Assembly (NCBI GenBank): GCA_021613535.1
Contig: CP075496.1
Coordinates: 9,300,001 to 9,364,000, forward strand
Reading direction: 5' to 3'
Source: Adineta vaga
Lineage: Eukaryota > Animalia > Rotifera
Length of the DNA stretch: 64,000 nt
Position 1 is the stretch's first letter; each line of letters opens with the position of its first letter. The notes beneath the pieces are model-generated. The model searched no databases. It saw only the letters and a list, made by a program, of their open reading frames with translations, and was not told the DNA's origin. Positions 54,021-55,042 of the stretch are shown piece by piece. The position numbers and the translations under genes were made by a program.

Positions 54021-55042
54021 ATGAACGCAGACAACATTCAATATCCGAAAATAAGCGATTGGTCGGCTGCATCGCCCGACATTTTTCAAACTCGAGATTC
54101 AAGTACCAGTAACGATATCGAGACCATCAATGTCAATCATAGTTATATGAATGACTTTCCTGCAAAAAAGTAAGTTGAATCAAGTGATTTATAATAAAAC
54201 TTATGTTTTAGTTTTAAAACATTTCGTAGGTCGGAAAAGTGTTCTTCATCGATGTCGCCATGTATTCAAGGTCTTCTATTAGCTATTGCGACAAATGCTA
54301 TGACATTGGCTGCTGTCGTCGTATTTTGGCTAGTGCCTCACGATAAAGTAGGAATGATTACGCAAAATGGTAAATGTTTGTCTATTTCTTACAAATTTTC
54401 ATACTTACCAATTATTGAATTGTAATAATCTTAGAGTTACCACCTGGCACAATTATTCTGTTTGCTGGTAATCTATCGGTTCTCAAAGGTTCAACGCATC
54501 GTTGGCTAATTTGTGATGGATCAGAAGTATCACGTGTGACATATCAAGATTTATTCTACGTAATTGGCACTATGCATGGAGTTGGCAATGGTAATGATAC
54601 CTTCAATCTACCTGATTTTCGTGCTCGATTTCCATTAGGTAATAATGACAGTAGTAATAATTCGTATGTCACTGGAGGTACATCATCGCATACAATAACA
54701 GTAGCAGAATTACCAGTACATTCGCACAATCAAGGTTCATTGACAACAAATGCTAGTGGTGTACATACACACTCGTACGTTGATCCCGGTCATAATCATG
54801 GTGGATCAACAGGTAGTGGACCTTTTTCTGGTGGCTCTTTTTCTATGATAGGTACTGGAGGTTCTGGTAATGATGGTGGAGCGCATACTCATACTATTCC
54901 TGCTAGTACGACTGGTATTACAATACAATCCGATGGGAGTCATACACATCCGATACAAGGTTCAACTGGTTCACAAGGCTCTAGTCAACCAATTGATACG
55001 ATGCCACCTTATCGAACTGTTCATTACATTATTCGAGCATAA
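54021..55042 (+). CDS. Membrane-anchored phage tail-collar / tail-fibre-like protein, 3 exons
   Basis: Introns 54170-54211 (or 54229) and 54370-54434 join a cytoplasmic N-terminus and TM (GLLLAIATNAMTLAAVVVFWLV) to LPPGTIILFAG...WLICDGSEVSRVTYQDLFYVIG...TFNLPDFRARFPLG (tail collar). Then five HxH motifs and MPPYRTVHYIIRA. Confidence 0.9.

Follow-up and report, generated by a model that had tools for sequence, protein, structure and literature searches.

In the bdelloid rotifer Adineta vaga, a real, spliced and transcribed animal gene encodes a collar-needle module of the phage tail-fibre type behind a predicted membrane anchor. The gene occupies positions 54021–55042 (+) of the window, the 64,000-nucleotide stretch of contig CP075496.1 that was analysed, and was read from the sequence as three exons totalling 897 nt (298 codons and a stop). 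It is likely, though well short of certain, that this is a horizontally acquired gene which has become a bdelloid membrane protein: a type II trimeric needle whose tip probably binds a glycan or protein on the surface of another cell.

The three exons and both introns lie on the + strand. Exon 1 (54021..54169), assigned by translation, contains the start codon and the cytoplasmic tail (residues 1–49 and two bases of codon 50); exon 2 (54230..54369), assigned by translation and hydropathy, encodes a juxtamembrane Cys/Ser stretch and a signal-anchor transmembrane helix; exon 3 (54435..55042), assigned by translation and its Pfam Collar and Gp10_C matches, encodes the entire ectodomain, residues 97–298, and the stop codon. 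Intron 1 (54170..54229; 60 nt, GT..AG) is absent from transcript contigs of sequencing runs X2 and X13. Intron 2 (54370..54434; 65 nt, GT..AG), a phase-1 intron one codon ahead of the collar domain, is absent from contigs of runs X1, X2 and X13, which come from three studies; exactly 54170–54229 and 54369/70–54434 are spliced out. The first-pass annotation had supposed that the transmembrane exons are spliced to the collar exon, and a single 974-nt X2 contig indeed joins all three (53938–54169, 54230–54368 and 54434–55036). The start of this contig gives the minimum extent of the 5' untranslated region, which also falls on the + strand (53938..54020). Run X9 holds the unspliced DNA form of the gene. 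As the X1, X2 and X13 evidence consists of assembled contigs, it establishes presence and splicing, and not expression level. A homolog search with exon 3 as the query returned the 298-residue NCBI hypothetical protein I4U23_020066 of A. vaga, which is identical end to end with the spliced model, exon 1 included; the exons were queried one by one, and the whole protein was taken only as this public entry.

The exon 3 product matches the Pfam phage tail collar family Collar (PF07484) with 68.5 bits against a cut-off of 24 (E 4.9e-19) over the full length of the profile (1–57), in agreement with the earlier view that the collar domain is complete. The domain covers residues 101–163 (54446..54634, +), and a profile search of the genome gave the same coordinates. 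A second Pfam family, Gp10_C (PF21939), the C-terminal domain of baseplate protein gp10, matches exon-3 residues 61–200 with 32.7 bits (cut-off 27). Exon 3 also matches 20 PHROG tail or tail-fibre families, while NCBIfam has no family for it. Beyond the collar lies a needle shaft (residues 192–268; 54719..54949, +), delimited by motifs, conservation and trimer-model contacts, which contains the five HxH motifs that had been noticed at first reading: HSH 192–194, HTH 207–209, HNH 216–218, HTH 247–249 and HTH 266–268. These are candidate axial metal sites. Their spacing is kept in the rotifer copies checked, namely five A. vaga paralogs and the Rotaria and Didymodactylos orthologs, except in two divergent long forms (L007 and L008), where the fourth motif is irregular. 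The first three motifs are at least 90% conserved in a 97-sequence alignment that includes bacterial relatives. A distal tip loop is placed between the third and fourth motifs (residues 224–246; 54815..54883, +) on the basis of column entropy, tip comparison and dN/dS. The chain ends in a putative return strand, MPPY...YIIRA (residues 286–298; 55001..55039, +), which has the lowest column entropy and makes contacts in the trimer model.

Three copies of residues 97–298 were predicted to form an intertwined trimer with a pLDDT of 87 and an ipSAE of 0.85 against 0.00 for the best control, a score that may owe something to solved fibres memorised by the model. The ipSAE mark was calibrated with two copies: among proteins whose solved structure is a pair of one chain, 21 of 30 attained it, and among those solved as single chains, none of 23 did. 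The model contains more than 800 contacts, with 93% contact agreement between runs, and inter-chain contacts are extensive over residues 183–295. In it, Y289 of the MPPY strand touches residues 161–164 in the collars of neighbouring chains. Since the C-terminal segment thus contacts the collar of other chains, the model supports the fold-back of this strand that the first-pass annotation had described, along with a trimeric needle. The AlphaFold monomer has a pLDDT of 77, high for the collar and C-terminus and moderate for the needle (57–69). Foldseek returned 8kec, 1ocy, 9nxk, 6ov6, 2xgf and 2fkk as the best PDB matches, the nearest folds being the cyanophage A-1(L) fibre, the T4 gp12 receptor-binding domain, the Pa223 fibre, Bizionia C24, the T4 gp37 tip and the gp10 C-terminal domain. 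Both T4 proteins to which the fold had originally been likened, gp12 and gp37, are thus among them, and the ectodomain models as a homotrimer like those of gp12, gp37 and the A-1(L) fibre. In a library of viral structures the nearest entries are many phage collar proteins and two giant-virus proteins (E 1e-10).

The closest known system is the A-1(L) tail fibre (8kec), which is the best match of the family profile among solved structures (E 1e-27) and the best fold match (E 2e-7, TM 0.54 by query). It has the same order of collar, HxH-bearing Gly/Ser/Thr needle and C-terminal return strand. It is, however, a virion component with an N-terminal shaft, where the rotifer protein has a tail and transmembrane helix on separate exons, and identity is ~28%. 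In T4 gp12 and gp37, pairs of HxH motifs hold axial metal ions; these fibres depend on chaperones of the phage, and their targets are E. coli LPS or porins. The gp12 domain (1ocy; profile E 3e-9) and the gp37 tip (2xgf) share with the rotifer protein the collar fold, the intertwined trimeric needle, the HxH motifs and a chain that folds back toward the collar, but are only 18–20% identical to it; the rotifer protein differs in its five HxH motifs, its much shorter tip and the lack of a phage context. Secreted bacterial collar proteins (MdpB-type; Bizionia argentinensis C24, 6ov6) show the same module outside a virion, but are exported by a cleavable signal peptide and have neither an internal signal anchor nor introns. 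The giant-virus matches, an Orpheovirus collagen-like protein and a protein of Cafeteria roenbergensis virus, are viral particle or fibril proteins rather than cellular membrane proteins; they place the module already in viruses of eukaryotes, which makes them a possible route of transfer.

In place of a virion attachment region, exon 2 encodes a hydrophobic helix of about 23 residues (~residues 62–85, ~54264–54335; Kyte-Doolittle 2.14), with a net charge of +2 before it and −1 after it. I4U23_020066 has no N-terminal signal peptide. A transmembrane helix is found at the same place, with positive-inside charge, in the Adineta, Rotaria and Didymodactylos orthologs, and its C-terminal flank in orthologs of three genera is neutral or negative. 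Helix, charge and orthologs together predict a type II topology, in line with the host-type tail and membrane helix on separate exons that were recognised at the outset; the collar would then begin only ~12 residues past the membrane helix. The cytoplasmic tail of ~60 residues is conserved within Adineta only, and its exon 1 motif QYP[KR]ISDW is common to the A. ricciae orthologs. Pfam searches of exons 1 and 2 gave no family at E 0.1, so that no signalling or sorting domain can be claimed; a recognisable cytoplasmic signalling module, as expected of a pattern-recognition receptor, was not found in these exons. N-glycosylation sequons are about equally dense in rotifer proteins and non-rotifer homologs (15.5 and 14.7 per 1000 residues), and are therefore uninformative on the secretory route.

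The gene is found in the middle of a chromosome, on a 15-Mb contig, and is flanked by a gene with LDLa, EGF and 7TM features and by other rotifer genes. Its upstream neighbour (48935–53566, +) is a single frame of 1543 residues that combines LDLa and EGF modules with a C-terminal region that is hydrophobic, multi-pass and 7TM-like; the A. ricciae counterpart (1559 aa) matches Pfam 7tm_1. Downstream, and convergent with the collar gene at a distance of 93 nt, is an intronless gene for a class I SAM methyltransferase of 247 residues (55136–55879, −; Methyltransf_11, E 9e-25), which holds the same position in A. ricciae. The methyltransferase is bacterial-looking, perhaps another gene of foreign origin. 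With just one copy in the genome, it gives no help on whether the C1 paralog of the collar gene is an ohnolog. One X1 transcript contig spans the collar gene and the gap and runs into the methyltransferase, so the 3' ends of the two genes may overlap.

The same neighbours flank the two A. ricciae copies of the collar gene (L097 and L098), which establishes synteny. The plan of tail exon, transmembrane exon and collar-needle exon is repeated in A. ricciae, an Adineta-like metagenome contig, the A. vaga C1 paralog, Rotaria magnacalcarata and Didymodactylos carnosus. In copies with this plan the phase-1 intron sits one or two residues ahead of the LPxG start of the collar. Position and phase of intron 2 are the same in the C1 paralog (L002) and in the metagenome contig (L011); in L097, L098, L104 and L105 the position is the same and the flanking bases are consistent with phase 1. 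The shared plan across genera indicates that the fusion of anchor and needle is old within bdelloids. D. carnosus also has a second collar gene (L104 1727–2530, 220 aa) in tandem, ~500 nt upstream of the anchored gene. A virion-attachment N-terminus and a phage structural gene context, both of which mark a phage tail fibre, are replaced in A. vaga by a tail with a membrane helix and by animal-type neighbours; I4U23_020066 is a derivative of a tail-fibre module, not a tail fibre itself.

All named matches above 41% identity are bdelloid (Adineta steineri, A. ricciae, Rotaria species and Didymodactylos). The nearest outsiders are 33–41% identical and comprise bacteria of many phyla, reaching 41% (for example Chitinophagaceae), and phage fibres at 33–37%; absence from other animals was judged on named matches only. 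The bacterial relatives examined have signal peptides or phage-fibre N-termini, and none has an internal signal anchor. Non-metazoan relatives outside the bdelloids, again among named matches, together with introns and linkage to animal genes, are what is expected of horizontal acquisition. In a maximum-likelihood tree of 102 domains, a quick search from which the giant-virus sequences and one divergent A. vaga locus (L010) were left out, a branch with an SH-aLRT of 87, below the 95 mark, separates all 47 rotifer and rotifer-like rows from the rest. The rotifer clade divides into two subclades, one of transmembrane-type forms and one in which long, secreted and Didymodactylos forms are mixed. 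The simplest reading is that the module was acquired once, long ago, and later duplicated and gained further domains. Of the original proposal that the module is phage-derived, the type of module stands; a phage is only one candidate for the direct donor, bacterial and giant-virus proteins being similarly distant. With outside relatives only 33–41% identical, the donor could be a phage, a bacterium or a giant virus, and the bacterial collar proteins, which reach 41% and have signal peptides, are equally plausible donors.

Many metagenome ORFs called 'microcystin-dependent protein' match exon 3 at 60–73% identity. One was opened: on its contig (L011) a transmembrane exon and an intron of ~530 nt lie upstream of the collar ORF. 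These ORFs are very likely rotifer exon 3 as read by prokaryotic gene callers. In that case L011, L012 (both ENA metagenome scaffolds) and similar matches lead to rotifer proteins being filed as 'bacterial' in public catalogues.

The first-pass annotation had called for a collection of paralogs. A profile search of the A. vaga assembly (six contigs, 101 Mb) yielded nine loci above the Collar cut-off and one divergent locus, and both anchored and secreted forms are present. Three are anchored short forms: the gene at 54021–55042, L002 on C1 and L003 on C6. Most of the remaining loci are long forms that share an N-terminal region. One of these was translated whole (L014, 4472–6742; C1, ~4.08 Mb): it is a single-exon ORF of 756 residues with a signal peptide, a region of ~450 residues and then the collar-needle module. 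Its public entry, I4U23_001257, has 780 aa, and orthologs occur in Adineta and Rotaria species. The ~450-residue region has homologs in bdelloids only. Nothing in the protein atlas matches it convincingly (best 0.80), and Foldseek gave no E below 0.001 in the PDB; among atlas structures the TM was at most 0.33, and the model of the region was poor (pLDDT 66). A further long-form paralog (L009, 928–1908; C4, ~0.81 Mb) keeps the collar, with the HxH needle missing or truncated, and is possibly a decaying copy or a shortened variant. The divergent locus (L010, 1195–1911; C3, ~20.35 Mb) is collar-type, with a signal peptide and an apparent intron within the collar; it resembles MdpB-type proteins more closely (Gp10_C E 8e-6) and was perhaps acquired separately. 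The family is thus bdelloid-wide with several architectures, which goes beyond what was first described.

Pairwise dN/dS over exon 3 is 0.13–0.49, which shows that the ectodomain is under purifying selection. Among 71 rotifer-type sequences, column entropy peaks in the post-collar loop (167–176) and at residues 225–246 between the third and fourth HxH motifs; the collar core, the HxH sites and the C-terminal strand are most constant, the strand forming the block of lowest entropy. Tips range from 27 to 49 residues, with ~28 in I4U23_020066, and all 87 rotifer-type tips are distinct; some paralog groups have aromatic-rich tips. By entropy and tip comparison the tip is the most variable segment, as had been expected of a specificity-determining end. 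Its dN/dS is the highest of any region, ~1.1 in the closest pair with nine changes, other pairs being saturated, and for these reasons positive selection is not claimed. The pattern points to tip evolution that is relaxed or diversifying. Variants within the species include several non-synonymous changes.

These features can be assembled into a proposed working. A collar-needle module, a complete receptor-binding module of the tail-fibre type corresponding to exon 3, would have been acquired horizontally, and a bdelloid ancestor would have joined it through a phase-1 intron to two exons providing a short cytoplasmic tail and a signal-anchor helix. The product is predicted to be a homotrimer held in the membrane by three N-terminal helices, with the collar almost directly on the membrane. 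From there an intertwined Gly/Ser/Thr needle would project outward, held together along its axis by as many as five HxH metal sites; by analogy with T4 gp12 and gp37, each layer formed by a triplet of HxH motifs may take one Fe or Zn ion. The variable loop would lie at the far tip, from which the chain is modelled to return so that its C-terminus packs on the collar. The near-to-far orientation would be as on the phage, the membrane standing in for the baseplate. Judging from its relatives, the tip most probably recognises a glycan or protein exposed on another cell. The needle would stand at the cell surface, and the preferred ligand would be microbial, serving prey capture or defence. Bdelloids feed on microbes and are attacked by them; for this reason, and because relatives of known function target bacterial envelopes, a microbial ligand is judged most likely. 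Many phage fibres need dedicated chaperones, and that none is evident for the rotifer gene counts against this best explanation. A broader proposal, that the one acquired module has given rise to a germline repertoire of anchored and secreted trimeric needles whose variable tips recognise different microbial surfaces, is tentative and at present doubtful; it would amount to a recognition system of the animal, for defence or prey capture, made from the means by which phages locate bacteria.

Two other accounts of the gene would deny it a function or an animal origin. That bacterial or phage DNA was misassembled into the animal genome is suggested by a domain typical of phages and bacteria and by the 'microcystin-dependent protein' label of the exon-3 ORF in metagenomes. 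The metagenome match that was opened, however, itself comes with a transmembrane exon and intron, and the gene, mid-chromosome with the same neighbours in A. ricciae, has two spliceosomal introns that are both removed in transcripts. The early argument that the introns speak against contamination is thereby upheld, with the chromosome-scale contig, the animal-type neighbours and the A. ricciae gene order all in agreement. Spliced transcripts and synteny refute contamination or misassembly, which retains almost no probability. A second account, in which the gene is a leftover of gene transfer, expressed but without function and on its way to being lost, draws on the many foreign genes in bdelloid genomes, the truncated needle of L009 and the non-synonymous variants within the species. 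Against it stand an intact frame, synteny, an identical exon plan in Adineta, Rotaria and Didymodactylos, the low dN/dS, and HxH motifs and a C-terminal strand that are nearly invariant. These effectively exclude a pseudogene or neutral relic, and this account, very improbable, was rejected.

The main rival keeps the same architecture but makes the ligand the animal's own, so that the protein would serve in cell-cell or cell-matrix adhesion or play a structural role in rotifer tissue. The secreted long forms, with their bdelloid-only region of ~450 residues that matches no known fold, could be matrix proteins, and the collar and shaft are strongly conserved, both of which are compatible with such a role. 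The solved relatives of known function, however, are phage receptor-binding proteins for microbial surfaces, and the tips of paralogs differ sharply while the shafts stay constant, which fits varied external targets better. An own ligand is accordingly considered unlikely, and a microbial ligand remains the preferred reading.

A literature search on collar or tail-fibre genes in rotifers, bdelloids and Adineta found no paper on the family, and public databases hold automatic names only ('Phage tail collar domain-containing protein'). Expressed bdelloid genes of non-metazoan origin that have acquired introns, some of them used against microbes, have been described (PMC11258130); no collar-domain gene is mentioned in the text of that paper or in the supplements searched. 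The collar gene would share with these the same general process of retention, but those described are mostly enzymes and biosynthetic clusters (PMC11258130). The keeping of a phage-type receptor-binding needle by an animal is not described in the literature searched. Its setting is new: the needle has acquired a membrane anchor of eukaryotic kind, no fewer than nine loci encode it, some anchored and some secreted, and selection in three genera is purifying. Should microbial surfaces prove to be what the tips bind, an animal would clearly have turned a viral device for host recognition to its own use. The ectodomain, of roughly 200 residues, would then also offer a compact glycan-recognition scaffold that a eukaryote naturally expresses.

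The module itself is widespread, with about 42,860 cluster representatives matching the ectodomain at E 0.001. In the wider library it also occurs in two giant proteins (P0158 and P0159; 4832 and 2368 aa), which carry 8–12 collar-needle modules in tandem.
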